In this document: in pieces, positions 11,845-45,939 of the stretch | Layout: each line of letters begins with the position of its first letter | Position numbering within the stretch: position 1 is the stretch's first letter | Origin: Oopsacas minuta | Lineage: Eukaryota > Animalia > Porifera | Length of the DNA stretch: 64,000 nt | Assembly: GCA_024704765.1 (NCBI GenBank) | Contig: JAKMXF010000357.1 | Span: forward strand, 62,001-126,000 | Direction: 5' to 3' | Translations under genes and position numbers: made by a program | The notes under the pieces: model-generated | Told to the model about the DNA's origin: nothing | What the model saw: only the letters and a program-made list of their open reading frames with translations | The model's database searches: none

Positions 11845-12829
11845 CATAGCCTACTATACATAAGGAAATATGGACCTCCCCGATCTACTGTGAAAATGGT
11901 TATTTCTTCTTTTTATTGCCAAATATGGTCAAATCTAGTCTACCAAACATAAGACTACATATTATTAAAAGAATTTGGGACTATGGTGCGATTACAGGAT
12001 GGATTTATTAATGAACCACAATGTTAAATATTTAATTTATTATCTAACCAAAACAAACGAAAATTCAGTTTAATATATAAATAAATTAAAAAATATATAC
12101 TCAGTTGTGTTCGAATTCTGTCACTCCTGATCTTTTTCTTTGTGTTTATGCTTGTATTATCCGTATTAAATTAATTTATTAACTTTTTTCTGCTTAGTTT
12201 AGCATTTTACCACTGTTGAGTGTTGATAGCTGCTATCAATTATGCCTAATTGCTGCTCCGCTCCTGGGTGCAAAAGCAACTACAAATCTACCCATGAACT
12301 GTACCCTTATTCAAATTACCTAATCAACCACCTGAACTCAGACATTCTTAGATTAGGGGTCTTCGGAGGGATAATGTAGATGAATTGAAGTCTGTTTGTG
12401 TTTGTGTTAAACATTGTCACGGGGAGGATGTAGAATACAGTCACAAAGTTCCAACTGGAGATGGAACCTTTCGTGAAATCCCTCGAATCATCCCCAAGCT
12501 GAAAGATGGCGCTATACCAGTGTTTGTACTAGGTTGTCCATCGTACTACCAATCTAATACTAAGCGCAGGCGTCCTCTAGAATTAAGAGAAGATGAACTA
12601 TTCTACCAAACTTTGACACTAAGCTTGAAATCAGAAGCTGAAGAGATAGATAAGTTCAAAATTCGCAGTTGTCCCGATATTTCAGACAAATTACCTTTGC
12701 TTTCCTTGTCTAAAACATGGTCATTATGGCATCCTGAGCCAAATACTATTGTTTTTATCCCCCGTCTTGTAAATACTGATATACTTGTAAATATGTACTT
12801 GATAGTACATTCCGATCTATCTGTTATAG
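11845..12829 (+). mobile_element. P/THAP element, left half (TIR plus THAP-domain remnant)
   Basis: TIR CATAGCCTACTATACATAAGG at 11845. THAP motifs MPNCCSAPGCKSNY (ATG 12242) and VCVKH...PKLKDGAIPVF (12385 ORF). Interrupted at 12830 by a hAT TIR. Confidence 0.85.
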
Positions 12830-12972
12830 CAGGGGTGGCCAACTTTTTACAATCTGGGGGCCAGATTTAGTTATTTGGAGAACTCGGCGGGCCTCGCTAA
12901 TCCAAGTGCCCTCAATATGTTTAACGTTTATTATATAAAATTTTGGCAAGGGGAATAAACGTTTATTGTACT

Positions 12973-14632
12973 TTAAATTATATAAGTAAGATTAATGTGT
13001 TGTTTTTGATGGGCAAGTTTTATAAGGTCTGGCTTTAGCTCTGTCGTGCTCAACCGAAGTGATACTGCCACATGTTCATCTGTTAGTCTTGATCGTACTT
13101 TCGATTTTGTAAGCTTCATCAATGAAAAGGTTTGCTCACATATGTAGGTGCTACCAAAGAGAGAAAACATTCTCTGAGCACGTCTCCTTAAGTTTGGTTC
13201 GCGTGGACGTGCTTTGTAGAACGCAAACAAATCCCTTTTATTGATTTGGGTTTGGTAGTCCGCTTTGATGATGGGGTCGCTTTTCCCAGAATTTTAGTAA
13301 AGGGAAATGGGTGACGTCATCTCGTGCCAGTTGGCGTTTTAGAAGTGTCAATTTGTTGGTGAAGGCATCGACACTGGCAATCACATCCAATATGTTCTTT
13401 GACTTCCCCTGCAGTTGAGTGTTGAGACAGTTGAGGTGGCTTGTAATGTCAGCAAAGTACCCAACATCTGACACGAACTCCGGATTGGTCAAAAGGAATT
13501 CACGGCCTTTGCTCAACAAGAACTCCGCGCTGACATTTCTTAACTCAAAGACACGTTCCAAAACCTTTCCACGGCTAAGCCATCGAACTTCTGTATAATA
13601 ACATATGTCGGAATACTCGGCGTTACACTCATCTAGGACAATTTGAATTGTCTGTGGTTGAGAGCATGTGATAGGGTGAAGTTCACGTATTTGATCACAA
13701 CTGACATGACATCTTCAAACCCAATTGCTTTGGGGCACAGGGCTTCTTGGTGAATAATGCAGTGATACTGCATCATTTCATAAGATTCAGAAGTCGAACT
13801 CCACCCATATCAACCTGTTCTTTAGCATGCTCAGTCAGTTTTGTCACTGCTCCTACCCTTGTGCCAATCATGGCAGGGGCACCATCAGTAGTTACTCCAC
13901 TCAGTTTTCCCCATGCACCACCTAATCCTATGTTTTCAAGCCCTTTGATCGTTTCTGTTGCAATGTCCGCTCCGGTTGTGGTACTCATCATCAAGCGCAT
14001 TTCTACTAATTCTTCTGTTGTTGCAAAGTCATCATTTACTCCACGAACAAGATTAAAAGCTGCGATGTATCGGAAATATCCGTGCTCTCATCAAGAGCAA
14101 GAGAAAAAACTCGAAATTCCTCCTAACTATTTTCAGTTGTTCTCTACTATCACTTGCCATGTCTACAATTCTCCGAGTGACTGTTTGGCGGGACAAACTG
14201 ACATCTTCGAACTTCTGCTTTTCCTTCGGGCAAAGTTCCATTGCACATGCTACCATACATTCTTTGACAAATTCGTCATCTGAAAATGGTTTGCATTTTT
14301 CGACGATCTTCTGTGATACAATGTAGCTAGAAAGCATAGCTTTTTCTTTGTCAATTGTATTAAAAAGTGAATCCTGTTGACGTTCAGTCCCTTCATTAGT
14401 TTATCGAGTCTTTGTTTCCTGGCCTCACCATGAAGTTCTTCAAATTCATCTTTATGCATTGTGTTATAGTGTCTGGATACATTACTAACTTTCATTACAT
14501 TTACACTTTGATTACAGATAAGACAGATCGGTTTTCCTTTCTCTTATATGAAAAAGTACTGTAATGTCCACTCTTGTTTAAAAGTTATGCCTTCATCAGT
14601 AACTTTCCTTTCTTTACGGGCCTTGATGCCAT
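12973..14632 (-). pseudogene. Decayed GTF2IRD2-like hAT transposase
   Basis: SLSRQTVTRRI, VTTDGAPAMIG, HCIIHQEALC, VRWLSRGKVLERVFEL, FSLFGSTYICEQTFSLMK, RSRLTDEH; multiple frameshifts. Confidence 0.9.
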
Positions 14633-15264
14633 TCAATAAGAAATAAGTAAGAAAATCCACTATTACTAATAATTAAGAATTAAGTTCATTGTCCTGGAAC
14701 GAATCCCTGTTTTATACCCAGAATCACGGACATACCCAGGATTTCATGCAACATTTATGAACTATACGCCTTAAATTTCCCCCTCAGTTTTCCGCGCGCC
14801 TAGAATATACATATATTATTACGGTATGGGGGTCTTGCTCGAATTTTGACGCTCCGGATCATCAAGCATATTTATCCTCCTTCTAATAGTTCTGTCCCTT
14901 ACTTCTCCTGATCGTTCGATAGAAGTTTGATCAGGAGGGTCAATCAAATACAATTGGTTGACCTAACGATTCAAAGTTATATTATTTATATTAGTTGATT
15001 ATGTATGCTCCAAAATACTAAGCTTGCAACATTTTATCGAAATGTACAGGTAGGTGACTCTCCATATTTTGTGGCGAACACAGAATTTTAGCATCTTCTC
15101 CACAAAAGAAATAATTACACGTATACATTCCTGATATATATGACGAAACCTTATTATCTCTACTAAAAGTAAAATAATCTTGTGTCATTTAGCTACTGCA
15201 GAATTTCTATGTTTTACGATATCTTAATACTGAATCATTTAGATTTTTGTTCATAAAACATTCA

Positions 15265-17930
15265 CACAGTGTGGAAAAATGGCCATAATGGGGAAATAGG
15301 TAAATGAATCTGTAATATCACCACAATTATACTTACATATACTAAATCGACACTGTAGATTTCAAAAATACCAATGATTTTAGTAGCACGACTATAAACC
15401 TAGTTATGACGTAATTACTGACATTTTCTAATTTTTAACACTGGTTCATTAGTGAGGATATTATGAAAGTTGGTAATACATGCATGTCATGGTCTCTATT
15501 CTGCTATTTGACAACGTACAATTTAAAGACCCTTAATTATGTATGACTATTGGATATACTTATTATCATAAATCATCTGATAGTATACTATTATATAATA
15601 TTTCTTGGAGGCTATTTGCAACGTCTCTTTTCTTCTTTGCGTGCTTCAAATGATTCTGTACTAAGATGGGGTCACTACAACATAACAACCTGACTAAAAT
15701 ATCTCTAACATTATCTGTGAAAGAAGTTTTTCTTGCAAGATTCTCCCGATACCGCCTTACAAATTTATTGCAGGATTCTAAACATTCCTCAGAGAGATTC
15801 TGTAATCCCTTACCATTATTGTAAGCACCTATTAACTGAAACGAATTGGTAAGTAACTTGTGCAAGGATGGAGTGATGCTTGCCTATGGGTACTCAACTA
15901 GAATAAATTCGTACGTTTCTTTGCACAATTCTTGCATTTTGTCACAGTTAATCAAGTCACCACTGTTGAGGAGTCTTAACAAAACAGATAGATTTGTCTG
16001 AATCTTCTCTAATGATACTTTGTCTGAAGGATTAATGGAAGAAGTGGCCCCCGTCAAAAAGTCTCTCTTATTTAAAAAGCAGTCTCGCGCAATGTTACCA
16101 GTGGTTGAAGTGCCGCCCTGGCTTGAAGGGATATCGACACTGAAATTACATCTTTCCTGGAGTATAGTTCGAACCCGTTTCATGGAAGAATTTACTTTCG
16201 AGTTTGATGGCGCCCATACCTTCTGTCCTGCATCAAAATGGTATATCAATAGCATGAACCACCTGAATACACAAAGGTAAGCATGCAAAGGAGACGCAGC
16301 TATAATATCGATGTTAGGAGTTGGTTGATGCGTAATACCAACACGTTGATTTGATGGGAGTTTCAAGTAATCTTCTTCATCAACCACTTCAAAAAGTTGC
16401 CGAGCGTCGCTAATTAATCTGTTAATAGGGAAACCAGAACGGGGCCATTCTAGACTTTTAATTTGGCTATCCGTTGCAGTACACAGATGACAAGAAGCCC
16501 CAACAGCTCCATCCAGCAATCCTGCCATCTTGGTATCAAAAAGGGAACGGACTATCTCGACCTGTGCATGGCCTCCAATAAGAGATAACCCATCCTGTAT
16601 GATATGGTCTGTTTGAGGATTGACTATTGTATTCATGATAAGCTTTACATTGGAATATTCTTCTTTCAAAGCTATGAGTGCTACTGGCCTAAAGCAGAAC
16701 GGAGAGTTGGGTGAGCTGTTATAGAACACGTCATTTTCAAGTGTGTCTGTAATTGGCATTACTTTGAATCCGAACAAAATGAAAGTCTTTGTGCTTAATA
16801 CAGAATTGTTGCTTTGTTGGTTATAGGTTTGATGACAACCAGAGCCATCCAATCCATCAGATATCTTAATTTTGAGTGGGTAGTGTGAATCAGGAACTGG
16901 GTCTAATGTTGAAAACAAGCGTTGAATGGTCAGACTAAGGATGGAATGATAAGAGACACAAGTCTCAATTGACAATGCTTCGGGGTCTCTAACTATTTCC
17001 ATTTCATTTATTAGGCTTATTTCCCTACGATATTGCGAGACAAGCTTATAGGAAGGAAGCTTAACATCACCTTTTGAGAATTCTTTTCAGATTCGTGTAT
17101 TTACTCGCCCCAATATATAAGCACATTTAGAGATTTGTACTTTGTTCAATACACCGCTAAAAGATCCCTTATCAATTATTTCTCTGCACATGTCTGAAGT
17201 ATCACGGTCATAGGATTTATTTGAGACTAATTCTAAAGCTAGAGCGAGTAGTTGTTTAGGCTCAATCTTTTTACTCTCTGCTAAAAAGTCCACATGCTCT
17301 AAAAGAACACCAAGTCTCGATCTGGAAGTCTTCATGTGACATTCGAGAATATGCTTCCGGGATTCAGTTACAACAATCTGTTCTGAAAAGTTTCGATTTT
17401 CAGAATCAGCGACTAAACAAGAAAATTCAGGATCAAGCGATATTCTCTTTCTTGGATTGGATATTGTTAGATGAGTAGAGTGAAAATCATGTTATCCCAT
17501 GCTTCAAGATCCTTCCTGCGGTAAGCCTCTCTGGATGTTAGAAGTGATTTACATTTGAAATGGAGAGTAGCAGTTTCTTCATCGGATAAATGGTTGTTCT
17601 CAATAAGTTTTCTAACAGAGACTGTAACACTTCTTCCATTCGAAATATACAAACTATATGTCTCATTGTTCGTGATTAGTACAGACATGATTCACAAAAG
17701 GGCTACTTTAACATAGAAACATTATGGTATATGGTTGTAGAGTATTGGAATAACTAATAACCAGCAAAATATAGAATTTTACTGAAAAAATTTATAACGT
17801 ATGAGAAATATATTTTTCGGATTTTTGTCCGGGTCCGGACAATGAATGACGTTATAAATTTTTGGGAAGCTTTTGCAAGCCTGGAAAGTGATTAAATAGT
17901 TGACTAAATATAGTAACATTACGTATATAT
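15265..17930 (-). mobile_element. RAG1-core-like (Transib-type) element 1; 3' terminus CACAGTG, 5' end lost under a mariner insertion
   Basis: GLDGSG, SLFDTKM, CHLC, SPLHAYL, GTSTTGNIARDC, SEECLESCNKFVRRYR parallel the RAG1 D600, D708, Zn-site and E962 regions. The core ORF 17002-15566 has one in-frame TAG at 15884. CACAGTG at 15265-15271. Confidence 0.85.
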
Positions 17931-17932
17931 TA

Positions 17933-18960
17933 CCGGGTGATTAAAAAAAATGCAACCCAAAAGTAAATGTTTGGAGTGAAGACAATTCTTAATCAAACTG
18001 AATCAAACTCAGACCATACGTAGAATATCTATATTTTTAGTACATATTAAAAATTCAGCGTACTACAGTCAATATTTTATGATTTAGAGCAAATGTTCCA
18101 AATGACCTCCTTTGAGTTCTGTACATTTCTTGAGTCGTACCACCAAGTTGTTCATGACATTTTTGCATACAGTGGTCGGAATCTTTCTAATTTCTTCTCT
18201 GATGTTTTTCTTCAACTCGCTGATGGTTCTAGGCTTAGTAGAATAAACTCGGTCTTTAAGATAGCCCCACAAGTAGAAGTCAGGAGGGTTTAAGTCGGGG
18301 CTATAGGGGTCACTCAAAATTCGTCTTGAGACTGATGACTCTTGCTCCAAAGTGTTCTTTAAGCCAGTCCCTGGAGAAATTTGAGGTGTGTGAGCTCGCT
18401 CCATCTTGTTGGAACCAAAAATGATTCAGAAGTGATGGGTAGAGGACTCTGAGCTGCTCCCAGAAGAGCTCAAGGACCTGGACATCACGTTCTTTCGTAA
18501 CTGTAACAGCCCTGTCATTTTCTTCAAAAAAGAATGGTCCTATGATCCCTTTCGCCGAAATGGCTGCCCATACTGTGCATTTTTCTGAGTGTAGTGGTTT
18601 CATTGCAACTTCCATTGGTCTCTGGGTTCCCCAGAACACGTTTGTCTTGGAGTTGATTTTTCCATTTAGATGAAAGTGGGCATCATCGGACATCCAAAGT
18701 AGTGAAAGAAATCGGCCCTGACAGTCAACTATTTGACCATGTATACTTCATCCACTAATTTGGCCCACTTCCACTTATCAGGTTTAACAAAATTAGTATT
18801 ATTCGATAGAGGAGAGTTTATCGTTTTACATAATGTGATTATTGTGCAATTTATTAATTTATTTTTTGATCAATTCCCTTGCATCGAATTCATTAAATTC
18901 AACACCTACAAGATAGAATTCGATTCTGAAAATTCATATTCACTTTGTCCAGTATGAACG
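17933..18960 (-). mobile_element. Truncated mariner/Tc1 (DD37D-like) element
   Basis: TA+CCGGGTGATTAAAAAAAATGCAACC terminus at 17931. Motifs WMSDDAHFHLNG, WFQQDGASSHT, SPDLNPPDFYLWGYLKDRVY. Confidence 0.85.
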
Positions 18961-18989
18961 TGATGTCCTATATTTAGCTGTATTCTTAT

Positions 18990-19857
18990 CAATTAGCCAA
19001 TTTTTCCTGATTTAAAAGCTTCTTTCGTGATTTGTGATTTAAAAGAGCTCCCAATAATACTCTAGGACGAACATATCCATATATTACAACAATCGGTTGC
19101 TGGTTCTATTTTGCAAAAGCAGTCTTTGAAAAGGTTGAGAAAACCAACTTTGAAAATTATATCGACATAATCAAGCTTTCAAATTATTGATCTGAAAGCT
19201 AATGGCATTACCACTACTACCAGAAGAGGTAAATCCGGTTTACATATCATTAGAGGCACAACGTGTTCGATTGGGACAAAGAATTAATCAGAACATCTCA
19301 AAAGTATTAACTTATCAGTTATTTTATCATGAAAATGCACCCAATAATGAAGCGGAAACATACCACAAATCCCTAAAATCATGTTCAAAGAGTTATCATC
19401 CAAATATTTGGAAGTTTATGGAATGTTCAAACAATGTTATTTCTGATAACGATTTGGAATTGCAAAGATTGGTGAAGCGACACGCAACTACAAGAGATTC
19501 TAATGTGACAACCAGGTTATCAGATACGTAGAAAGAGTGCAAAGAAAAATATTTGAATGATACTTATACTGCAGTTGACTATTTCAATGCAGGAGAATAT
19601 ATACCCTATATTAACATCAGCACCCTTTCAATGTTCTGACGATTTGGACCGTGTACCAGATGATTCTACGGGAGATGAAGAAAATATTAGTAGCCAATGG
19701 AACCTTTGTCTACTATGTGACTAATTTCGCACTCTTACATGTTAATTCCGTGCATGGAGGCTTATGTGAGACGTGTGCCATTCGATTATTGAATCTTAAG
19801 GTTAGATGTCGAATCTGCAAAGAAGACAACAAAGGAGTTTTGCAGATCTTTCAGTGA
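18990..19857 (+). pseudogene. MULE/Mutator transposase C-terminal remnant followed by a degenerate RING finger
   Basis: GCWFYFAKAVFEKV, LMALPLLP, NNEAETYH..., HPNIWKF; then HGGLCETCAIRL...CRIC...LQIF. Confidence 0.7.
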
Positions 19858-21850
19858 TGTATCAGTCGAATATCACAGTTTTTCTCATTATCCACTTTTA
19901 TTTCATTCCATTTACTATCTTTCCATTCAGTCATTACATTAATCATGCTTCTAAATATATGAAGATAATTGCCAGGGGAAAGCCAGACATCTTTCAGGAG
20001 GCAGATTGTTAATATGAAACTTTGCGAAACTTTGATGGGACACAAGGCGAGCGACGGTAAGGGGGTCTGGGGGCTTGGCGCCTCCCAACAATTCTCTTTC
20101 ACAGTCAAATGCTCAAATATGAAATTGAGCTATTATTCCTCTCATTAGATACAAAATAGTTAAATTTGCTTTTGCTTGGGCGTAAGATTACTGCGTGGAA
20201 GGTAACTGTATTTGAACTGTGAAAAACAAATACAGTACCTACTATAAATTGTGGCCTATTGAGGCCTCTTATTTTTTCCTCTGCACCTCCGCCTTGCGGA
20301 GATGGTGTATTTATCCTTCCTCATACGCCACTGATAAACGTGCATTCGGTGAAGCAAGCTGCTGAAATGGCGGCATAGACCCCAACCTATGAGAAACCGA
20401 ATGGTGGTCACCTTCTTACCTCTTCCATTTGGACACTTGCATTAAGTCAATTATAGAGTTCCAACTCTATAATTGACTTGCAGCATTACAGTGTTCAAGC
20501 ATCAATCTCGATAATGAAAATATTTACTTACCAGCTGTAAAAATTATCATTTTGTATGGCTATTAAAACAGAGGAATAGATGTATATAATAGTGAGCAGT
20601 GATATCATATCATGATGCCTCGAATAGTAGCTAGGGCGATAATTATTTCGAGGCCCTTGAGGAGTAGTTATTGTATTTGTAAACAAGTAGGTTAATTCGT
20701 GAATATACTAATTTATAGCTTATGTTTTGTATCCTAAGTCAAGAACATCAAACATATTTCGATTAGTCAGGCTGACCGATACGAAATATACATATAGAGT
20801 CACCAAAATTAGCCCGATCGACAAATACTATTCCTATTAGCACTCCGAATATTTTCCAGGTTGAAACCTAACCGACTTGAGTGTTTCCTACAGCCATGCA
20901 AGTCTAAACAGTAGTTATTTCTATTTACAGAGGAAGGGAGATTTTCAATAGCTAATTAGACAGGTCAACAGTGTATATTCATCAAAATATTTTCTAATGT
21001 TTTGTATCAAGTTTGATATGCTGATTCCGAATATGTAGTCCAATATAGTACAGCACGTCACAATTTTATTATATTCATCATGAAAAATGGGGAAATTGCT
21101 AAAATTTCGAAATTATTCGAATTGTCGACCTTAAGTGTAATTATGTCTCACTTAATCTAAACGAGCTCTGTACAACTGGAACAGGTAAAAACACTCCATA
21201 AATCATATTTTGTATTTTATTTATTTCACTATTGTGCCTATTATTTGATTTCCTTCCCAAAATTAACAGTTTTGGCTATACAGAGATCTCTCCGATTATT
21301 TAGGTGTTACAAAGACCCTATTGTTCTCAAATATCTGTAATTTCTTGGTCATCACTGTTGGCCTGTGTTATCAGTTTTTTTAACCCCTCATGAGTATAGG
21401 CGCAGCGCCGGGGAGGGATGGGGGGCTGGCCCCCAAAAATTATTGAATATATTAATCATACCAAGGAATAGTGGAAAAACTGGATATACTTTGACAGGCT
21501 GTGCCCCTAAAAATCCTGTTGCTGCTACGCCAATGCTAAGGATGTCAAGGAGGTTACTATTCAAGGAATATGGTAATTCACATACCATAGTACCTCGAAT
21601 AATAGCCGGGCGATGATTAATTTCAAGCTCCTTGAGAGGGATTTTTCGATTTTGTAAACACGATAATTACGATATAATCATATCAATGTGCTTGCATAAT
21701 GCGTATTTATCCTTACAAACAGTAGGATAATCATTTTTAGAAGAAGTAAGATTCACTTTAAGCATTATTATACCATCGGAGCCTCGGGCGATTATTCTAG
21801 GGTGCCTCTCATTCAAGGTAATACGCTACCAAAATCCCGTTCTTCTAGAT

Positions 21851-23095
21851 CAGGGGTTTCCAACCTTTTCGAACAAGGGGCCACATTCCAACTTTATTGC
21901 ACATAAAGTTCCGATTAATACTTGTGAACTGATAATTTTTGCAATTCATTAAATCAAATTTAAATTATAGCTATATTTTACTTTACTGTGGAAATTTAAT
22001 TAGATGTTTGGAATTGTTTTTGCTTGTCAATGTCTGCCGGTACGCTTGATGTAGCGATACGGAGTATTCGGTGAGATGTTCGTCTGTCAATTTAGATCTC
22101 GTATTTGTTTTAACGTTTTTCATTCTCGAAAAAACTGTTCGCAGCAATATGTACTGCCTAACAGTACAATGAAACGAAGTGCAAATTGTGAAATATTTGG
22201 ATAGGACGCTGAGGTAACACATTTACGATAAAATGCTCGGAGATCATGTTCAGCGAAGCCCTCTTAAAATCACTGTCATATTGAATGTCAATTAGTTCCA
22301 ATTGGAACATGGCATGAACAGCATTGACATGAATCCTAAATGGATCTGAAAACAGTTTGAGTTCATCACAGTGTTCACTGAAATCCGCAAACCCTAGTTC
22401 AAATTCGTTTCTTAAAATTTCAATGAGAGCAGAATATTTTTCATACTCCACTATCGTTCCATCCCTAGTAGATAGAGTTGTGAAATGTACAATTTTCTTG
22501 TTAATCAACTGTGTATGAATCAATTCTAATTTTGAATGAACACTTTTACATGTTCATACAGTTTGTTGACACATTGCTCCTTTCCTTGTAGCTTCATATT
22601 AAGTTCCGCGAGATACTCGGTAATATCAACTAGAAATGCCAAGTCTTTCAACAATTAATCATCTTCCATAAAGCTTACATACTTTTCCTTGCTCTACATA
22701 AAGAATTTAATTCTTTAAGTAGGGAATAGAATCTGGCAAGAGTGGCCGCTCTGCTGAGCCTGCGAACATAGTTGAAATAAATGACATCGTCGTGGTCAGA
22801 TCTACTTCTGCAAGAAAGGCCTGAAATTTTCTGTGATTGATTCCCTTAGATGTAATGAAATTGACTTTTTCCATCACATGTTTTATCTTTAGGGCTTTTG
22901 CACACGGTTGCTGTTGGTGAATGATGCAGTGATGTGTAATGACTTCATGAGATACATATTTAAGCATTAGACTAGAGAATTATGCTTTTCTATCAGCGCA
23001 GGGCTCCATCAGTTGTTATGTCACAAACTTCGTCCGAACTTAGATTGAATTTCATCATTACATTTTTACTTCTTTGAAAATGTCTTGTCCTGTTG
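21851..23095 (-). mobile_element. 5'-truncated decayed hAT (GTF2IRD2-like) element
   Basis: TIR CAGGGGTTTCCAACC at 21851. HHCIIHQQQPC, FSDPF...FQLELIDIQ, FSRMKNVKTNTRSKLTDEHL. Confidence 0.85.
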
Positions 23096-23803
23096 TTTAA
23101 GTGCTAGTGCCCTCCTGTTTATTAAGGAAATTGAATTTTAAGTTACGAAAGAAGGTATCTATAAATTTTGAAGGGGTTATGATTGAGAAATAACTTCAAG
23201 AATCGAACTCAAAGATAGAATTCTTAATACCCAAAAACCGGAGAAATAATCGATTTTTGCAGTCAGTTGCTGGTGATAATTTTACTGTTTCACGGAAATA
23301 TCGATATTGTTATAAAAGGATATATCTTAACTTTTGATAGCATAACAATAATTGAAAATCAGGCAGATTTAGGGCAAGAAATTTGAATTTGAACTGTCTC
23401 TACTTTATGATTCATCCATCCCCTACCACTGTCACTCCCGACTTAAAAATTGAATTCCTCTAGCTCCGCGAGTTGTTAATATGTCTTAATGAAATTTAAT
23501 TTTCATAAACGTCCATATCACCAAAGTATGCATATAGAATTTCAGAATCTAATTCTGACTTTTAGGTATGTAAGTTCAAGGGGGTCGTGACTCTAAAAAT
23601 TTTAACCAAAAAAGTAACTAAAAATAAAAACATATTGCGTAAAACGTTCAACTCTCCTTTTTCCAATGATACTAATTTCGTTTAGATCTGATGATGATAA
23701 GCGAATCAAATTAATGACTGTATTCACCCTTGTTGAATAGTCTGCTAACTTGTTCGTATAATTTTTCAAAATAAAATATTCCCAAAAGTAAGAAATTTTA
23801 AAC

Positions 23804-34349: not shown

Positions 34350-34373
34350 TAGATAGATAGATAGATAGATAGA
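34350..34373 (+). repeat. (TAGA)6 microsatellite
   Basis: Directly visible. Confidence 0.95.
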
Positions 34374-36037
34374 CTTATATACTAAGTCCCCATTTAGAAC
34401 TGAGTCACTATACTATGGAATAGAATTCATCAACACAGTGAAACCACAAGACTACTAAGCGATGCGAATTGGAAATGAAGAACTGCATGGGTTCAGCTGC
34501 CACATCTTGACCATCGCCCACTCCAATTGGTAGCTGCACCCTCAGGATTGAAGAGGAGATTTGACACATTAGCAGGGAGAGAGAGAGGAAAGAGAAAGTG
34601 AAGATTCATACCAAAGGAATGGAGATAGTGAAGCGTATGCATGAGCACCATCATACGCACAGTGGGCTATTATTGCGAATTACTAGTATTAGGGTTTTAC
34701 GCGTTCAATTTTAGAGATAGGCTTATAAAATACATTATTACTGTATAGTAAGTCGACTATTGCAGTTCTTTTGTTGATTTCAATTTTGTTGTATCACATC
34801 AGGTTTTCAATATATGACGTAATCTTAATTACCATATACAGTAATACAGAAATCTAGATATACACTAAACTGAGATGTATTAAAAGAAATAGAATATGAA
34901 TATATTATGGCTATGGTAACTGAAGAATAACTAAAATAAGAATATCTTACTGACGAATTAATGTTAAATGCAAGAAGAGTTCATCTATGGAATTTTGAAG
35001 GAAAGAATCTTAATTATCAATATTATTTGTAACGTTTTCACCTTGCCTGTTTTTTACACAATTCTTTTGATGGCCTACTTGACCACAGGTGGAACAAATG
35101 ATGATCCTTCTGAATTTTTCATTCAGAATTGGACAACCATAGATGTAGAGTCTCATTGCAACTTCACTTAACCCACTTAGAAAATCTGATCTCCTGCTTA
35201 AATGTGTTGAGAACTCTCGGATCAACTTATGTCCTTGTTCTAACCCTTCTTCAGAAAGACTACACAATCCTACCCTGTCATTTCTCTCAATTAACTCATG
35301 AGCATGAGCCAAGAATTTGTGGAGTGTATTGCTATTAGATACCCAGGGAAAGGTTTGTAAGATTAGTATGTAGGTTTCTTGACTTACACACGAAATCTGT
35401 CTACATCGACAACTTCATTACTATCAGCAACTCTGAGCAATGCAGATAGATTTCTGTGAATCTCTGTCAGAGCATCTCCATAAACATTGGTACAAACGAT
35501 AAAGAGATCCTAAAACACTGTTTTTTATATGAAAAAAATGTTCTTGCCATGTTACCAGTGCTTGTGTTCCCACTTCCTCCTGGTTGGTGGAATAATAAGT
35601 TCGTAAGCACATGGATACGCTTGCATACTAAACCTCGATAATCTCACACCATTTGATCTTCAGTCCACTTGGACTTTCCTGCTGCAATTCGGTAGATGAG
35701 GTTCAAAAACCAATCTAAAATCCTTAGGTAAGAATGTAAAGGTGCTGCAGGAAATACATCAATTCTACTTGCAGGTTCGTGTGTAATTCCACACCGTTGC
35801 TTTGTATTGTAGCTCATCAGCTCTTTTCTATCAGAGGTTAACTGACCGATTGTCTCTTTGATATCCTCTATCGAACCATCTAAAGGAAACCCGCAAACAA
35901 CTTCGTAATGCTCTTGATATCACTTCGGGTTGCTTTGCAGGCAATACATGGCGCTCCTCCTTTACCTGTTATTGTTGCTAAGGTTTTTCCGTCAAACATT
36001 GAAGCTTTAACTTCCACTGGAACCTGACCATTTAGGT

Positions 36038-38362
36038 CAGGCTTGTCCAACCTTTTTTGTTCGCGGGCCAAATGAGGGCTTCTTTATCTACTTGTTGGCC
36101 GCACGACATTGGATATATCAAGGTAGCATGATGTTATTTATTTGGGGATGGCGTTAATACGGATTATTTCAGAATTGAAAAATCACTATATGTATTATTT
36201 AATTATAGTAAACTTTAATGATAAAGAACATATCTAATGGGATATCTGACTTTGTTTTTGTTTACACAAAGAGTCAATATCTGCTCGTACACTTGATATC
36301 GCAATCCGTAATATTCCTGATAGATGAGTGTCTGTCAGGAGTGATCTAGACTTGCTTTTAACATTTTTCATCATTGAGAAAAGCTGTTCACAGCAATACG
36401 TGCTGCCAAATAAGGAAAGGAACCTAAGGGCGTGTTGCGATAAATTAGGAAATAGATCCGATGTAACATATTGACCATAAAATGTCAGAAGGTCATGCTC
36501 TGCAAAAGCTCTCTTTCTCTCCGAGTTATTTTGTATTTCAATTAGTTCCAGTTGGAACATTTCAGGAGCATTAGTGGCATCAGTTCCAAACGGATCTGCA
36601 AACAACTCCATTTCATCGAATTTGTCACTAAAATCAGAAAATCTTAGTTTAAATTCATCGATTAAGCTGTTGATCAGTGCAGAATACTTATCATGATTCA
36701 CTGTCTCACTTTTTCTTGAAGATAATGTTGAGAAATGTACCACCTTTTTCAAAATAAATTGTTGGTGGAATAATTGTAATTTGTTGATGAACGCTTTGAC
36801 ATGCTCATACAGGTTGTTAACGAATTGTTTTCTTCCTTGTAGTTTCAGATTTAAATCTGCGAGATACTTAGTTATGTCAACTAGAAATGCGAGATCATTC
36901 AACCACTGATCATCATCCAGAAAGCTCACATCCTTTCCCTTAATGGTCATGAATGTTTTTATTTCTTCAAGTAGTGACCAGTATCTGGCTAGAGTGGACG
37001 CTCTGCTGAGCCAGCGAACTTGGCTAAAGTAAATAACATCGTTATAGTCTGATCCTATCTCTGCAAGAAACACTTGGAATTGTCTGTGATTGAGTCCCTT
37101 CGACCTTATGAAATTGACTGTATTGACGACATTTTCCATCACATGTTTCATATCTAAGGTTTTTGTACAAAGTTGTTCTTGATGAATAATGCAGTGGTAT
37201 GCCATAACAGGAGAGGTCATTGATTTGAGCATAAGGCTAACAAAGCTTTATGCTTTCCTGTCATCGCAGGGGCTCCATCGGTTGTTAAACCACTTAGTTT
37301 TTCATCTGCAAGTTTGAATTTCATAAACACATGTTTTACTACATTGAAAATATCTTGCCCAGTAGTTGTGCCTTTCATTGGACATAAGTCGAGCAGTTCT
37401 TCGATTATTTCGAAATTTTCTGTGACACCACGTACAAAGATTGCCAGTTGAGCTGTGTCGCTAACATCGGTACTTTCATCAAGGGCCAAGCTGTAAAATT
37501 TGCAAGCATTGAGTCGTTTAATTAGTGAAATTTCAATGTTGGATGATAAATCATCTACTCTTCTAGCAACAGTTTGATGTGACAGACTGATGCTCTCTAC
37601 TATCGACTTCTTATTTGGGCATGCCACAGATGTAAATATGTCTAAGCAGTCTTTTACAAATTCCCCTTCAGACAATGGTTTTCCACTCTTGGCTATCGCT
37701 TCTGTTATCAGAAAGCTGATCTTTGTTGCTGTCTCAGAACTTAATTTAACGGCTTTGAAGAAAGATTGTTGACTGTTGATGCTATCCTTCAACAGGTTCA
37801 CCCGATCGATTCTCACCTGACCTGTAAGCGTGTCAAATGTATCTGCATGTTTAGTAGAGTAATGTCGTTTGATATTATACTCTTTGAATACAGCTATCTT
37901 CTCCTGACATATCAAGCACAATAAGTATTCGTTGTGTTCTACGACGAAAAAATCTAATGTCCATGAGGATTTGAAAACTCGACATTCACTATCAATTTTC
38001 CTTTTCTTTGCTTTAATCACGGGAGTTGACATATTTGTTTTGTAGTTATTTTAATATTGTTTAAGATGGTTTATTATTTGGAATTTATATGAGCTGTTCG
38101 AGTTGAGAGAAACCCAGTTATGTGACAGATGATTACTCAATCAAAACTAAATTACAAAGTTATTTAAGGATTTTTAAGTTATTGAAATCACACTTTTCTG
38201 AAATTGGTTTCATTCAATTTGGTTTTGCAATATTGGGTTTCTCTTAATTGAGTTCGCTCAAATAGGTTTCACTCAATTAAATATCGCCACCAACTGATAA
38301 CAGTTCCCGAGCATGTTGGCGGGCCGGATTGTGGCCCGCTGGCCGTAGGTTGGACAAGCCTG
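36038..38362 (-). mobile_element. Near-intact autonomous-type hAT element (GTF2IRD2/SPIN-Charlie-like)
   Basis: Perfect 15-bp TIR CAGGCTTGTCCAACC; perfect 8-bp TSD ATTTAGGT (36030-36037, 38363-38370). Transposase in two overlapping ORFs. Confidence 0.97.
36234..38032 (-). pseudogene. hAT transposase (~600 aa) broken by one -1 frameshift near 37245
   Basis: ORFs 37217-38032 and 36234-37232. Adding one G (AAAG[G]CTTTGTTAGC) gives GKHKGFVSLMLKSMTSPVMAYHCIIHQ. Motifs LALDESTD, TTDGAPAM, VRWLS, GSTYCCEQLFS. Confidence 0.9.
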
Positions 38363-40145
38363 ATTTAGGTGATCAAAACGATTCTCATTTAGTGAAACAA
38401 TTTCAGGGTTTAGTAACTTGCTCAATTCTATCACAGTGTCAATAGTCTCCTTTTGGCAAATTGGTGCTACTGGTTGGTTTGAAAAACAGGAGTTAGGATG
38501 CCGATTTTCCCACAGAACAATCCCGAATCGATCTATTACCTAACCATGAAGACAATATAATTTCGTCGGTCTATATTCAAGTCTGGCAATAACCCAGGAG
38601 ATGAATGAGATCCAGAACCATCCAGTCCATGCTTGATTTTGAGTGTTAATAGATAGAAGTGTGGTGCAGGAAAATTTAGCACACACTCTTTTAACAACCG
38701 GTCAAAGAGAGAAATTACATGTGATGAGTAAGATTTATAGACCCCTATAGCATTGGAAACATTTGGATACCAGTCGAATGTTGAACAATTGATTTTCTAA
38801 TTTCACTAATTTTTTCCCAAGTTGCCAAAACGAGGCCTTCTGATTGGAGATAATATTTAAGATATCTCCATTTTCCTTTCCTAAGCATAAGTTGATATGC
38901 TAAGAATGTTGATTTTTCTGGTGAAACTATGTTACTGAGGGCTGGTATCAATTCTTCGTTATAGATTTCCAAGCGATATTTGCGATGCCTTTAAAACCAA
39001 TTTGTTCTACAGCTACAATATACAAGAGGAGAGCAACGTAGCGAATAACAGAAATATTTTCAAGTTGTGCTAACTGACGGATGGAAGTAAGTATCCCAGT
39101 CTGATCAAGCCTTATATTCTTTGAACGAACTTGAATGTCATCAATTGATTTTCTCCTCTCTACATTTGGAACCAATATAACACCGCTTTCTACATTACAG
39201 CCTGAAACAGAAAGGGATGATTGGGTGATCTTAGGTTTAACAGTCCATGGAATACTTGCATTCCACACTCACCATCTAAGCTCTCAATAGATTTCTTACT
39301 CTTTCTGAAATTAAATGATACTTTAGACATTAGAGAGTATACAGAATGTCTCTTGTCTTCCTCGAGATTTAGTATACGCACCACTTCATCTGCTGTTTGA
39401 TTGATATCATAGTCGTGAACCTTCAATATGATAGCCAAGTCAAGACGTGTTTTGGGCTTTCAGATACTATTGTTGATTAGAGGTTTAATAGGTTATCAAA
39501 TTAATGAACTTGTATGCTATCTCGTGATGTGCAGTATATATAAATAATTATTACGTTATATTGGTGTAAAATTACCATGTAATTACATTACATTATACCA
39601 TAGCAACGTAGATGTGAGAATGGAATTTGACAATATTTAATATATTGCGCAATGAAGCGGTATTTGTACTTTTAATATAATGGTTATATTACTTGACAAG
39701 AATACATACAAAAATTCAGGGTGGAAACTAGTGGAAACAAATTTTGCTGCCAACAGGATGGCTTATGGCTGAGAGAAATTTCTACAAAATCTTCACAGTA
39801 TTGTATACGTAATATCTGATTACTCTTTCGCTCCTGAAGAAATTCAACGATAGATTCAAATTCAACGCACTCACTTTGCTTGGAAAGCATGTAAATGAAC
39901 AATAGTATGTATCATAAATTCAACAGATTACTGAAATAGCTTCAGTCATTTATATAATGTATGCATAAACATAGAAGACAGCAATGAAGTCCTACATTTG
40001 ATTGACCACAAAAATAGAAATACTTACTGTTTCATCTGATACTTTACATATCGCTTGTTGAATATCTAGAATCTAATTCATAATTCAAAATGGTATAAAT
40101 TGAAGGTAAGAATTTGGGCCTAATGTACCTTAGTAGCCCACTGTG

Positions 40146-41068
40146 CATACGCCTGACTTCAAGGCTCCGGCATGCTGACTTGGGACACAGGATAGCTCTC
40201 GCCATGTTATCAATGAAGGTATGCTGACATCATCAGAGGATACTGCTGCTAAACTACCTAAGTTGGACAGCCTATAGCGGAAATACAGGATCAGCGTGTA
40301 TGTATACTATCAGCCTCAGTTGAGACAACACTCTGGGAGAGTTGGTTCTACCTGCAAAATACCAGCGGACAGCCAAGGAAGAGCAGTGACTCTGATGCAG
40401 ATGATGTACACGAATGCCTCATCTTTGAGACTAACGCAACCTCGGAATGCTGCAGCGAAGCAAGATGTGGCTAGCTGATGACACCTTCAAGACGGTACCT
40501 CCCCTCTTGGCCCAGGTTTATGTCGTACATGGACTTGGTGGCGGTGATAATCCTATGAAGACTGTCATTCGCTGCCAGGACTATTCATCAACTGTCCAAC
40601 AAGGCGAAGTATGCCTACTTGAGGATGTGAATGCAGGTCCGCATACTCTGTCCCCCTTGCTCAGCCTCAGAAGATACACAGAGACTTTGAGAAGGGCGCG
40701 ATTTCCAGCTTTAGGGATGTCTGGCCTAATACAGTGATGAAATGCTGCTACTTCCACCTCACACAGAATATCTGGAGCCATATGCAGGCCTGCACCCTGC
40801 CTACACACATGATGAAGAGCTAGCCATGCGCATCCGGAAGATACCAGCCATAGCATTGGCCAGACAAATCTAGTATCCGATCTATTTGACCAAGTGGTAA
40901 TGGACATTCCCTTACGATCGAGATAGGCGATCTAGTCCGCTACTTTGAGAGGACGTATATAGGGCACACAGTAGCGAGTAGATAGCAAATAGCGGCGATG
41001 TACCTCATTCACCTGTGGAAATACCATACCGGCATGCCCTTAGGTCTCGCTCATACAACCAACGCCGT
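40146..41068 (+). pseudogene. MULE transposase remnant, copy 1 (5' part at ~34555-34657, 3' part at ~42766-43100)
   Basis: WLADDTFKTVPPLLAQVYVVHG resembles the MULE motif WxxDGTFKxxP..FxQLYxIH. Interrupted by RAG1-like element 2 and by 41069-42757. Confidence 0.8.
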
Positions 41069-42757
41069 CATAGGCTATTCTAAGGAAATTTATGTGACCC
41101 TGTGCAGATCTATCTTTTGTGTACTGCAATTATTTTACAATAGATTGCCAAGAAATAGGATCCTACTGAACAAACTATAGGAAAATTCGTCCCATCGAAC
41201 TTCAAAATTTATAATGCGTTTTAGTCTTAAGAGGTTAATATACCACGAATTTCCAAGTTTCCCCCCTTTACCCCACCCCCAAATGTATTTTATTGCATTT
41301 TTGATAGTTCTCTATGTTACGAAGATGTGGTAAATTTTTAGAGCTCTATCTTAAATATTCTCTGAAATATTTAGATTTTGGCTGACACCCCCTAACTTGG
41401 GCCTCAAACCACCCGAACATAAGGGTGAAGTATACCCAAAAAGACACACCAGTGGTAAAAATTGATGAAATATGAAGTATTGCAGGAATAGTATCTACTA
41501 TATGTGTATAACATGATGTGAAGATTTCATAGCACCTGCTTCCATAGTTTTTATGATATTTGCTCCCAAAGGTCATCTTTTCCCGTACCGTTGTATACCA
41601 GATTTTGGGTTCCTGAGGGGGGTACCATGAGATTACCTCATGAATTGCTACTGTATGAATGGGTATCAAACATACTATATTGTACTATGAGTATAAGGGC
41701 TATTTATGCTTATTTGTAATGTAATTTGCAAACTATTTACAACAAATGGGCATTATTTTCCATAGGAAGGTGGTGTTTTTCCTTCCTCAATTTCCTAGTA
41801 ACTTTTCAACTGCCATTTTCACGTCTCAAAATTCATAACTTGGCATGTATACAAGCTAGATTCAAAACTAATGGTGTGGGAGAGATCTCGTACCCTTGAT
41901 AAAGGTAAGTTGAAAGGATATACAATATAAGTTGAATTTTCAAAATGTTTAGCCGGAGATAAACTGATAGACCAAGTAGAGTGAGGTATGTTTGCTCGTT
42001 GCTACATATCGAAATTCTAATCAACTTACTATTCGTTCTAGGCGATTACGATTACATATCTATGTAGATTACAGAGATATCCTTGCTCAACGTTTCACAA
42101 TATACTTTGAAAGTGTACCAGTTAAAACTATTAGATCATTCTTATATATAGTTGTTAAAATATTGTTGCATTTTTGGATACTAGTCAATGTTCCAAAATC
42201 CTCCTAAAATCTCAAAGAGATCGAACAACTAGAACTTATCGCAGGTGTGTACATTGTTTTTCTAGCTCTTTAGTTCCAATAGCAAATGTATAGAAGAATG
42301 TTGACAACCCGCAGGCATCATCAATTAGTAAATTTACTTCATTTTGCCACTTTTCCAAATGCAATGTCTGACCTATGGACAACGTACTAAATTTTCATAA
42401 ATGGAAGAATTGGATTTGAGAAATGAATGTTCGTCTTGTAATGTTTACCACAAGCAGTTGTGTTCTACAAAATTAATACTTTCACCAACAGTTACAATAC
42501 ATGTAATGCTGTCAAACAGCTCTTTCCAAGTTATGGTAAAAGATACTGCTTCCTTGATATACATTCCGGTTTTTGTAATTGTCCTCTTTCAACATTAGAC
42601 ACTGTCGAAATATTTTCAGCATTGCATGATTTTGTATAAATTCTTGTAAGTTAAAAAGAATATCTACTACTTAAATAATACACACGAAAATTAAATAATT
42701 CACACTTGAAGTTTAAACGCACTTAAATGTCTATTAATCACGCAAAAATAGTCTATG
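41069..42757. mobile_element. Non-autonomous TIR element (P- or hAT-like) inserted in MULE copy 1
   Basis: CATAGGCTATT / AATAGTCTATG ends; 8-bp flanks AACGCCGT / AACTCCGT. MULE homology resumes after it. Confidence 0.75.
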
Positions 42758-43229
42758 AACTCCGTAGAGACATGATACTACAGCTTCAATGCCACAGTCG
42801 GCAACCATCACCCCACATGAAGTTCATCCTCGCCCTCAACTGTGAGGAGGGTCTAGTGGAAGTTTGGCATGCTAACTACCTTGCTGAGGAGCCACCAACC
42901 AAGCAAAGGAGGCCTCAGCAGAGCGAGGAACGCTGAATACTAAATTCGGAGAATTTATCCATCAGACCATCTAATGCGAAGTTCCATTTAAATGCACGAA
43001 ATCATTTCAGCCTAAGAACGGATGTTACTCTTCCATAGTATCTAGCCCTCAAATAAATTTGATTCGATATAATACTTTAGAGATTAATATGTTAATCCGC
43101 TCCCAGACTGAAATATGTGCTACACCCTGCAACAACTCCATTTTAGTAGGACCTGGAAATAGGATTCACGAACTAGAGCATCCAACGCTCATCACTCGGC
43201 TGAGACCTACTCCGCTTGGTTGATGGCTT

Positions 43230-44272
43230 CCCTGCAAGGTAGTTAATATGCCAGACCTCCACTAGGCCCTCCTCACCCTTGAGGGCGAGGATGAACTTCC
43301 ATATGGCGGGGTGATGGCATCCGACTGTGGTATTGAAGCTGTGGTGCTATGCCACTACTGCAATGGTTATACCAGGGAGACCAAAGGGCGTGCCGATGTA
43401 GTAGTTCCACAGGTGAATGAGGTACGTCGCCGATATATGGTATCTACTCGCTAATGTGTACCCTATATACGTCATCTCAAAGTAGTCGACTAGAATTCAC
43501 TACAGTGTTAGGGCAGACATTCTCAAAGCTGGAAATCGCGCCCTTCTCAAAGTCTCTGTGTATCTTCTGAGGCTGAGCAAGGGGGACAGAGTATGCGGAC
43601 CTGCATTCACATCCTCAAGTAGGCATACTTCGCCTTGTTGGACAGTTGATGAATAGTCCTGGCAGCGAATGACAGTCTTCATAGGATTATCACTTCCACC
43701 AAGTCCATGTACCACATAAACCTGGGCCAAGAGGGGAGGTACCGTCTTGAAGGTGTCATCAGCTAGCCACATCTTGCTTCGCTGCAGCATTCCGAGGTTG
43801 CGTTAGTCTCAAAGATGAGGCATTCGTGTACATCATCTGCATCAGAGTCACTGCTCTTCCTTGGCTGTCCGCTGGTATTTTGCAGGTAGAACCAACTCTC
43901 CCAGAGTGTTGTCTCAACTGAGGCTGATAGTATACATACACGCTGATCCTGTATTTTCCGCTATAGGCTGTCCAACTTAGGTAGTTTAGCAGCAGTATCC
44001 TCTGATGATGTCAGCATACCTTCACTGATTACATGGTGAGAGCTATCCTGTGTCCCAAGTCAGCATCCCGGAGCCTTGACGTCAGGCATATGATGGTGCT
44101 CATTCGTACACTTCACTATCTCCATACCCTTGGTACTAATCCTTGCTTTTCACTCCACTCTCTGCTCATACTGCCAATGTTTCATCTCTAAAACTCCCCT
44201 AGATCTATATTCGCTGAAATTCATGCGCCTGTAGGCGCGTTGCATACGCCTGGATGAAATCCTGGACATACC
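43230..44272 (-). pseudogene. MULE remnant, copy 2, inverted relative to copy 1
   Basis: ORFs 43759-43941 and 43500-43790 are (near) identical to 40296-40478 and 40447-40737. Confidence 0.85.
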
Positions 44273-44315
44273 TCATTTACGGAACTTTCCGTTCCGTTCC
44301 GTAAATTCGGTATGT

Positions 44316-44596
44316 CCAGAATTATGATCATATTGCTAATAATGAATCCCTGCTAATAACATCCTATTCCTGTAGGATTTCAAATTTTTAAAGAATGACA
44401 AATAGTATGATATTACTAAAATGACAAATAATATCAATCTAGATCCAATAGCATAAATGTAGATTTTTGGATCTAGATTGTTATTATTTGTCACTAGTAT
44501 TATTTATCATATACACATTAATCGAATGTAATAGGATGTTTCTTCAAAATTTGAAATCAAAATAGGATGATATTAGCAATATGATCATAATTCTGG
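44316..44596. repeat. ~280-bp imperfect palindrome (foldback)
   Basis: CCAGAATTATGATCATATTGCTAATA ... TATTAGCAATATGATCATAATTCTGG, with inner arms pairing around ~44455. Confidence 0.85.
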
Positions 44597-44690
44597 GGTT
44601 CCATTGTACATATTACTCATTCTCATCTCGAGGCTCTGCGGGCCACACTAAGGTATTGCGGGCAGCAAGTTGGCCACCCCTGTGTTAGAG

Positions 44691-45879
44691 CTTATTGTGA
44701 GGGAGAACCTTGTTTCCTTTCGCTAACCTCAATAAGCGATATTCGACAAATAGAACTATATTTGGTGAAACATCTAAATCAACACATCCCAGTGAATCTG
44801 ATATTTCTGAGACTAATGCTACCCATATATCTTCAAATATTTGAAGTTGTACGTTGTCTGAAGGTTTCAAATATTCTAAATCTATTTTCCTATCAGTCCG
44901 AATCATGTAATAATTCATTACAAGAATTTATACAGTCATTTCACCTGAAGAGAAGCTATTTTCAGATACTGATATTCATCTTGACCCTTTCCTTAGTGCA
45001 ATTTCTGATCTATCCAGCATTGAGTGTGTTCCCAAACAATTCAATCATTAGCTTTCATTGCCGGATGTGCTGCACACCAATACCTGAAACGAAGTCTACC
45101 ATGTACTTATGTCAAGATGTATTAATAATTGATAAGGATTTCCTAATTCATGAATCAACCAGATTTCAGGATAGACGGCTTGAGATTACTGATCGTGGAG
45201 GTCTAAAATATCCTTCTCAACTTGTCTCGGATTCTATAATCACTGTTTGGAATATTTTCACTGTTATCGAAGGAAATGCAGAATTGATGAGGATATTTGT
45301 TGAAGGATCATCTAGGCAGATTCTATTGGATCTTGTGTGCTGTTGATGATGGATGTTGGAAAGAACAATGCCCCTCTTGCAAGTTAAATAGGTCATCTAT
45401 TCTTCGCAAACTTGTATTCACTGAAGCGAATTGTTTAATAGGTAAGAAAGTGAAAAATTATAATTCTAAGGTAGTTTCGAAAGGATTAGAGAAACGAAAG
45501 TTGAAAAATTTAATTCTTAGTACTTTCATTGGCAGAACAGCTAACAGATCCTATATTTAGTAATTTTCTTTTTCATCTATTTGTACTTGTAATTTGACTC
45601 AATTGCAATTTTCTTATAGTTCTATTGTTATATTGACAATTAAAATACTAATTGTTGCATTTCTGACGAAATATATTTGGACAAATATAATGATGGAAAA
45701 TCCATCCCTATTTCATCCACAATTGCATCCATGGTCCCAAATTCTCTTATTTTTGGTAGACTAGGTTTGACCATATTGGCAATAAAAGAAGATATAACCA
45801 TTTTCACAGTAGATCGGGGACCCCATCCCTGGTACATATTTCAATTGTTACTGTGATGCCTTATATATAGTAGGCTATG
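44691..45879 (+). mobile_element. P/THAP element, right half (transposase C-terminal remnant plus TIR)
   Basis: DRGGLKYPS and ANCLIGKKVKNYN motifs. TIR CCTTATATATAGTAGGCTATG ends at 45879 (20/21 to the 11845 TIR); inner ~75-bp inverted block 45745-45819 pairs with 11877-11950. Confidence 0.85.
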
Positions 45880-45939
45880 ACCTAACCAACCTGACTGAGT
45901 GATCAGGTTAACTTGGCCAACCTGACCGAGTGGTGCCAT

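Follow-up and report, generated by a model that had tools for sequence, protein, structure and literature searches.

A predicted nest of three DNA transposons encloses the only twinfilin gene in the genome assembly of the glass sponge Oopsacas minuta

Introduction

How do the two halves of one small transposon come to lie almost 32 kb apart, and what fills the space between them? The locus that raises this question is in the glass sponge Oopsacas minuta. We analysed a 64-kb stretch of contig JAKMXF010000357.1 (G000:C357:62001-126000), called the window below. A preliminary description of its sequence proposed that a P/THAP element had been split by a hAT element, that its halves rejoin in frame, and that about half of the window therefore lies inside the hAT. 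The assembly comprises 61.46 Mb in 365 contigs with a guanine-cytosine content of ~36%. The published genome is described as 365 scaffolds of ~61 Mb with 36% guanine-cytosine content, and its repeats are given as 18% 'unclassified' and 15% DNA transposons (PMC10280926). Whether the split parts rejoin was judged throughout from natural uninterrupted copies elsewhere in the genome, and an artificially joined sequence was never used as a query.

Our analysis identifies three nested elements, namely a P-like element, a hAT element and a miniature inverted-repeat transposable element (MITE). The MITE is itself interrupted by 29 kb of ordinary genomic DNA that carries the only twinfilin gene of the assembly. 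The explanation that best accounts for the whole locus is a three-layer nest into which this block was joined by reciprocal exchange, possibly from a DNA circle, and we give it a probability of roughly 0.6.

Results

Three nested DNA transposons

The outermost layer is a P-like element on the forward strand, with a left arm at 11845-12829 and a right arm at 44683-45879. Its terminal inverted repeat (TIR), CATAGCCTACTATA, occupies 11845-11858, and the complement, which is perfect over 14 bp, ends at 45879, exactly where the preliminary description had placed the two ends. A 78-bp subterminal inverted repeat (94% identity) adds to this pairing. The first 8 bp of the right arm, TGTTAGAG, are the duplicated target of the hAT insertion, and the derivative is accordingly 985 + 1189 = 2174 bp long, close to the ~2.2 kb first estimated. 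The genome contains at least 35 P-related stretches. In six uninterrupted copies (L002 and five others) the two halves adjoin, with the 8-bp target counted twice. These copies have a single TGTTAGAG and read ...atctatcTGTTAGAGcttattg..., where the window instead has TGTTATAG, the hAT and then TGTTAGAG. Window positions 11877-12830 align to 2482-1500 of L002 (87% identity) and 44683-45882 to 1508-304 (88%). The halves thus match this copy end to end (E = 0) and overlap by 8-9 bp precisely at the hAT site, a match that, as judged by these alignments, is far beyond chance. The six copies argue against halves that overlap or that come from different subfamilies.

The reading frame is also restored when the halves are joined. 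Positions 12352-12828 encode 159 codons ending in ...HSDLSVI and are followed by one further base (g at 12829), which combines with ct at 44691-44692 to give alanine. The right arm then continues with YCEGEPCF..., reading (A)YCEGEPCFLSLTSISDIRQIE. In L002 an open reading frame (ORF) crosses the hAT site uninterrupted and reads HSDLSVRAYCNREPCL. The homologous 345-amino-acid ORF of another relative, L055, is collinear with both pieces. Its match to the left piece ends at residue 223 and that to the right piece begins at residue 229, and in both sequences five residues separate the two. The codon arithmetic, the L002 frame and this collinearity all bear out the in-frame rejoining that was originally proposed.

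When all stop-to-stop pieces of the two P halves and of L002 were searched against Pfam, neither a THAP nor a transposase match appeared, and the P pieces of the window gave no THAP match even at E <= 10, so the superfamily was assigned through relatives. Over residues 62-223 of the L055 ORF the 159-residue left piece shows 48% identity (E = 4e-42), and this ORF bears a THAP domain (Pfam E = 8e-12) and is followed by an ORF with a TNP-like_RNaseH_N domain. The ORF at 12385 that was first called THAP does belong to a putative THAP remnant, a frameshifted one at 12242-12530, but it holds only the C-terminal half of the finger; the N-terminal half is in another frame at 12242. Residues 1-58 of the left piece align to the C-terminal half of the L055 THAP domain with 48% identity, and the start MPNCCSAPGC aligns to the N-terminus of the L055 ORF (E = 1e-5). 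The C-X2-H and AIPVF motifs are still visible in this remnant.

Two more distant relatives, L058 (877 amino acids) and L059 (950 amino acids), retain intact ORFs with THAP, TNP-like_RNaseH_N (E = 1e-14) and TNP-like_GBD domains. The last of these is above the Pfam cut-off in L058 (E = 9e-6) and under it in L059 (E = 1.1e-4; 23.0 bits against a cut-off of 24.8). The two ORFs, at L058:1435-4068 (+) on contig C332 (~97.4-100.1 kb) and at L059:1052-3904 (-) on contig C310 (~923-926 kb), are apparently complete P-superfamily transposase genes. Residues 1-35 of the 217-residue right piece of the window element match residues 201-235 of the L058 transposase, and residues 46-194 match residues 712-861 (E = 8e-14). 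The right piece therefore skips from residue ~235 to ~712, and the RNase H-like/GTP-binding core is absent. Because of this pattern of matches, the window element is best described as a putative internally deleted, non-autonomous derivative with a THAP N-terminus and a transposase C-terminus and without the catalytic core.

The P element itself has no target site duplication (TSD), as the preliminary description had cautioned. Its flanks read gattgat and acctaac, though the family makes duplications of ~7 bp (gtagggc/gtaggac in L002, 6/7), and a search past the MITE that adjoins the right end found none. The left flank (11590-11843) is a repeat with 74-80% identical copies in contigs C4 and C326 that reaches the P boundary. 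On the right, a palindromic MITE family (45880-46100) begins exactly at the boundary. No insertion site can be recognised for the P element because its two flanks are different repeat families.

The second layer is a hAT element on the minus strand, with its left part at 12830-14736 and its right part at 44265-44682. Its ends are CAGGGGTGGCCAAC at 12830 and the exact reverse complement ending at 44682, with 31,853 bp between them. The TIR, CAGGGGTGGCCAACTT, pairs at 16/16 positions, is short and starts with CAG, and the 8-bp TSD (TGTTATAG/TGTTAGAG) matches at 7/8, as originally noted. The single TGTTAGAG in the six uninterrupted P copies identifies this octamer as the target. The first 8 bp of the right part, GACATACC, are the duplicated target of the next layer, and the hAT is thus 1907 + 410 = 2317 bp long, slightly more than the ~2 kb first suggested and within the range of its genomic copies (2.3-2.5 kb). 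The two parts adjoin in L012, L013, L014 and L023, and L012-L014 (~89% identity to the window) have a single GACATACC-like octamer at the joint. The 2,500-bp copy L012 is flanked by its own 8-bp TSD (ttctacat/gtctacat, 7/8). The decayed transposase gene, which is broken by frameshifts, lies on the minus strand. Its pieces match zf-C2H2_12 above the cut-off (E = 2e-7, 31 bits) and Dimer_Tnp_hAT just under it (E = 4e-4; 20.5 bits against 21.4), and they are 34% identical (E = 7e-24) to an ORF of hAT element Z (see below), which itself passes Dimer_Tnp_hAT.

A third layer escaped the preliminary description, whose two-layer nest is otherwise upheld. A hAT-type MITE of 184 bp interrupts the hAT, with 119 bp at 14737-14855 on the left and 65 bp at 44200-44264 on the right. 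It spans 14737-44264, has the TIR CAGGATTTCAT and is flanked on both sides by perfect copies of GACATACC (8/8), an octamer that is present once in the genomic hAT copies. The family is short, non-coding and multi-copy, with the TIR consensus CAGG[A/G]TTTCAT. Its copies are 181-184 bp long, except for L035 (129 bp), are 87-100% identical to the ends in the window, with 87-97% recorded for the left part, and make 8-bp TSDs (8/8 in L035, L036 and L037). The two parts in the window are contiguous in genomic copies (...gacgcgcc/tagatc...) and are joined in this way in L031, L033, L036 and L037.

Removal of each inner layer restores the layer outside it to the base, together with the reading frame of the P element. 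The assignments to the P and hAT superfamilies and the order of nesting agree with the uninterrupted copies, the protein collinearity and the TSD behaviour of each family. On these comparisons a three-layer P/hAT/MITE nest is almost certain. An internally deleted 2.17-kb P-superfamily element was in place first. A 2.3-kb hAT, now decayed, then entered its coding remnant with an 8-bp duplication, and the 184-bp MITE later entered the hAT with a perfect 8-bp duplication.

A permuted block of genomic DNA within the MITE

The MITE is interrupted by 29,344 bp (14856-44199). The claim that half of the window lies inside the hAT is correct topologically, but this innermost 29.3 kb is ordinary genome rich in transposable elements and not a further nested transposon. 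It holds at least ten unrelated repeat families, non-repeated DNA and a full-length gene that is unique in the genome, and for this reason the block is not a single transposon. The gene, on the minus strand at 27856-28953 (ATG at 28923), is a single exon in non-repeated DNA that encodes an intact 355-residue twinfilin. It contains the two ADF-H domains expected of a twinfilin (Cofilin_ADF x2, E = 1.5e-37) and is collinear with twinfilin-1 chain 7ccc_B (residues 5-332 against 4-332, E = 2e-77). Orthologues elsewhere are 63-71% identical. Protein and DNA searches found no other copy in the assembly, and the sponge's only twinfilin is thus topologically inside three transposons.

The ends of the block are explained by a family of TIR transposons that we call X, which has a short form of ~2.1 kb, TIRs of ~80 bp and the internal order arm-B-C. 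The right end of the block (44097-44199) corresponds to B and the left end (14856-15264, + strand) to C, which are neighbouring parts of X. The left end is 67-71% identical (E down to 2e-20) to the sequence that directly follows B in X copies. In at least 15 X copies the sequence runs across the break without interruption (...caactctcc/tatgcatcaa...) and with equal spacing on both sides, and the ends of the block (...aaactcccc and ggatcatcaa...) are in register with them. On contig C155, for instance, 704338 is the last base of B and 704342 the first of C. Intact X copies thus have the two ends of the block side by side, which makes the block a circular permutation. The X copy of the window is a diverged fragment that covers 1272-2009 of the short form. 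Its left part, together with the outer left arm of the X-internal palindrome, lies at 34478-34657 (+); it corresponds to 1272-1464 of the short form L048 and is an inverted copy of 44086-44188.

The two junctions, from MITE left to X right and from X left to MITE right, share one contig and one orientation and are separated by 29 kb. At the MITE nothing is duplicated and nothing is lost, X likewise neither gains nor loses sequence, and the CC at the junction belongs to the incoming DNA and is not an overlap of the MITE. The sequences that would have exchanged, gacgctcc^tagatc in the MITE and ...aaactcccc^ggatcatcaa... in X, share only 2-4 bp (CC/CTCC).

A TIR, a direct repeat and a TSD were sought for the 29-kb block and none was found, and readings of it as a long terminal repeat element or as a TIR element were dropped for the same lack. 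It was also considered as a Helitron. It starts with GGATCA and ends with CTCCCC at a cc/ta target, without the 5'-TC and 3'-CTRR ends or the A/T target of that class, and this reading was dropped as well.

Other contents of the inner block

Directly after the left X part lies R1 (15265-17932, minus strand), a Transib-like, high-copy element of 2.67 kb of which 39 copies were scored (92-97% identity). It starts at 15265 with the RAG/Transib heptamer CACAGTG, and no matching heptamer was found at its right end. Its 372-residue ORF (15884-17002) has no Pfam match, and its resemblance to the RAG1 core comes from language-model features only (score 0.97). Another R1 copy has entered the transposase ORF of the P relative L058 at its extreme end. 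R1 adjoins R2 (17933-18734), an 802-bp repeat with copies at 95-98% identity.

A Tc1/mariner-like element occupies 30269-31639 (TACAGTGCGTTC...GAACGCACTGTA, with TA on each side), and 13 full-length copies (83-93%) occur among the matches listed. The block also contains a hAT remnant and several MITE-like repeats. A Transib-like element, Y, lies at 34658-40145 with ends CACAGTG...CACTGTG and flanks CATACG/CATACG, and in five uninterrupted copies its halves overlap by 8 bp. It is split by hAT element Z (36038-38362; TIR CAGGCTTGTCCAACCT; TSD ATTTAGGT, 8/8), which has 99% identical copies and keeps two long ORFs with zf-C2H2_12, DUF4371 and Dimer_Tnp_hAT domains. Judged by these features, Z is very young.

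Y in turn interrupts a foldback structure internal to X. With Y removed, the left foldback arm continues straight on and mirrors the right arm. The rest of the foldback (40146-44199) has 597-bp arms (97% identity in a self-BLAST) and reaches the right edge of the block. With its inserts the foldback is ~9.6 kb long (34555-44199). Its inner arms are 97% identical to each other and ~80% identical to other family copies, and the outer parts of the arms are 79% alike, which suggests homogenisation of the arms or a private subfamily.

Two features lie just outside the nest. An inverted-repeat element of ~900 bp (46314-47219), next to the palindromic MITE family at the right P boundary, has arms that are 98% identical, and it also occurs beside an X copy in L045. 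A single-exon gene on the minus strand (48329-49417), 19 kb from twinfilin, encodes a cystinosin-like protein with two PQ-loop repeats that is identical over its full length to a 441-residue Oopsacas minuta protein at NCBI.

Discussion

Origin of the inner block

A 29.3-kb piece of genome carrying twinfilin would have entered the MITE as a fourth step, by a precise reciprocal exchange with an old X copy. The simplest path may be a DNA circle, consisting of X and ~19 kb of neighbouring DNA, that was opened within X by Campbell-fashion recombination with the MITE. The circle is economical because a single recombination between it and the MITE gives the permuted insert in one step. Circle-free routes such as inversion, sister-chromatid exchange and template switching would be expected to give an incorrect orientation, junctions on separate molecules, or MITE parts that do not complement each other. 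Gap repair with template switching was rejected on the last of these grounds, as the exact complementarity of the two MITE parts does not follow from it. We infer that the final event was not transposition of any one element. A real block joined by reciprocal exchange is probable, and a circular intermediate specifically has about even odds.

Several observations weigh against this explanation. The remainder of X that is expected past 15264 is missing, also beyond R1 and R2. The R1-R2 junction is seen in the window alone, and a TSD was not found there. The four bases after the left junction, GGAT in place of the family's TATG, are all different and could be filler (14856-14859) rather than divergence; a closer X relative that might show the ancestral junction was sought, and the best copy was 71% identical. 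X is broken no more than 2 bp from the outer edge of its internal palindrome and the MITE directly 5' of a TA, positions that hint at a cut made by an enzyme over random breakage. Topology alone points to the circle, since no donor site, circle-closing junction or second copy of the block was found. Finally, the published assembly combines Illumina with corrected PacBio reads in a SPAdes hybrid that was scaffolded with SSPACE (PMC10280926), and between 15.3 and 18.7 kb it is without a cross-check because the X continuation is missing and R1 and R2 lack a TSD or continuity of their flanks.

The locus might instead reflect a misassembly. A single reciprocal exchange between the MITE and X, as a translocation or inversion, would leave two junctions on different chromosomes or far apart, and the assembler could have misjoined the arms through a repeat in 15265-34477. 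Such two-break exchanges are commoner than integration of a circle, hybrid assembly and scaffolding may invite the error, and R1 and R2 (15265-18734) are multi-copy at 95-98% and abut oddly, without a TSD and with no X remainder after them. However, there is no N anywhere in the window, and a simple inversion would place the second junction in the opposite orientation. The repeats of the inner block, except Z, differ from their nearest genomic copies by at least 2%. For R1 and R2 the difference is 2-4%, so that few 99-mers can be shared, and Z, the sole repeat with 99% identical copies, is validated by its TSD and by the halves of Y. More broadly, nesting provides a cross-check on the right third of the block, where Z lies in Y and Y in an arm of the foldback, and both have a TSD. 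We therefore regard a chimeric assembly as unlikely. An aberrant transposase reaction is about equally doubtful. In this one-ended or 'two right ends' reaction, the right end of the foldback in X would be cut and joined to the TA of the MITE, the other target end would receive the donor flank, and everything between two X copies or round a circle would move. The break in X (...CTCCCC) coincides with the outer end of the palindrome (family TAGGAGAG...CTCTCCTA), a coincidence that by our inference has a chance of ~1e-3 or less for random breakage, and 44199/44200 reads as an element end followed by TA at the MITE site cc/TAgatc, as in Tc1/mariner-like elements. The left junction, however, has neither a TA nor an element end. 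A search that allowed up to 3 mismatches gave no palindrome-free X copy that would mark the palindrome as a mobile unit of its own with a TA TSD, and no transposase was identified for it. This reaction would in any case still require a circle or two X copies as donor.

Two other explanations have very low probability. If everything between the hAT ends were a series of later transposon insertions, the abundance of repeats in the interior, several with clean TSDs, would be expected. This plain nesting is refuted for the core, where the ends of the block are the ends of no element and have no TSD, the X fragments are in permuted order, and the only twinfilin gene of the genome lies among other non-repeated stretches. 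Alternatively, 14737-44264 (29.5 kb) might be a giant parent hAT from which the 184-bp MITEs derive by internal deletion, with the CC microhomology as the deletion scar. MITEs do arise by internal deletion of parent elements, and all short copies here share one junction. A giant parent nevertheless does not account for an interior whose first and last bases are neighbours in X. No transposase that belongs to the MITE ends lies in this interior, and it is unique, whereas the MITE has many copies that are 87-100% identical to the ends in the window. Genome searches showed no second long copy with the same interior.

Comparison with known systems

The nest itself is ordinary in kind. As in the nested transposons of maize, elements lie within elements, each layer has its own TIRs and TSD, and the order can be recovered. 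Here, however, the layers are DNA transposons (P, hAT and MITE) and not long terminal repeat retrotransposons, and the innermost 'layer' is no transposon. The P element likewise resembles the KP-type derivatives of Drosophila in keeping both TIRs, a putative THAP N-terminus and the C-terminus while losing the RNase H/GTP-binding core (residues ~236-711 of 877). It differs in that its family is ~30% identical to the full-length sponge P transposases and its own ORF is frameshifted and broken.

For the block, the closest parallel may be the KIT alleles of colour-sided cattle, which arose, as that work is cited in later papers, by translocation via circular intermediates (Durkin et al. 2012, doi 10.1038/nature10757, cited in PMC12235870 and PMC3784456). 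In the cattle alleles as cited there, the ends of the insert are neighbours in the intact reference, which makes it a circular permutation that carries a host gene, as in the sponge, and reasoning of this type is what established the cattle translocations. By the same accounts the cattle source locus is retained and the insert is ~500 kb, whereas here the source is gone or unlocated, the permutation is read from a transposon family, and the block is 29 kb with base-perfect junctions. Alternative transposition of Ac/Ds (reversed-ends or sister-chromatid) also uses non-standard pairs of ends to relocate flanking host DNA and genes. Those events leave termini and TSDs at the new junctions, in contrast to the sponge locus, which lacks a TSD and has a single junction that looks like an element end. 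Helitrons, Pack-MULEs and giant cargo elements similarly place a host gene within mobile-looking DNA, but the block has no Helitron ends, TIRs or TSD, and its gene is whole and the only copy, not a fragment or duplicate.

Significance

The nest orders the insertions of three DNA-transposon families relative to one another, in a genome whose repeats for the most part lack a classification. The intact transposase ORFs of 877-950 amino acids indicate that P-superfamily elements are part of the glass-sponge mobilome. The locus also carries a caution for annotation, since an annotator guided only by TIRs and TSDs would assign a host gene to the interior of a transposon.

Provided that the assembly is correct, a reciprocal junction that made no duplication and left a circular permutation has relocated or surrounded a single-copy gene. 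Such events are seldom caught at base resolution because the source locus is usually needed, and here a transposon family serves as the reference. Our most specific proposal remains tentative, and we rate it somewhat below even. In this proposal a 29-kb circle bearing the only twinfilin was excised and re-inserted base-perfectly at 2-4 bp of homology, with its break at the edge of a transposon-borne palindrome, and the locus would record a fixed relocation of a single-copy gene by extrachromosomal circular DNA or by a one-ended foldback-transposon reaction. If true, it would be a natural case of single-copy gene relocation via circular DNA in an early-branching animal.

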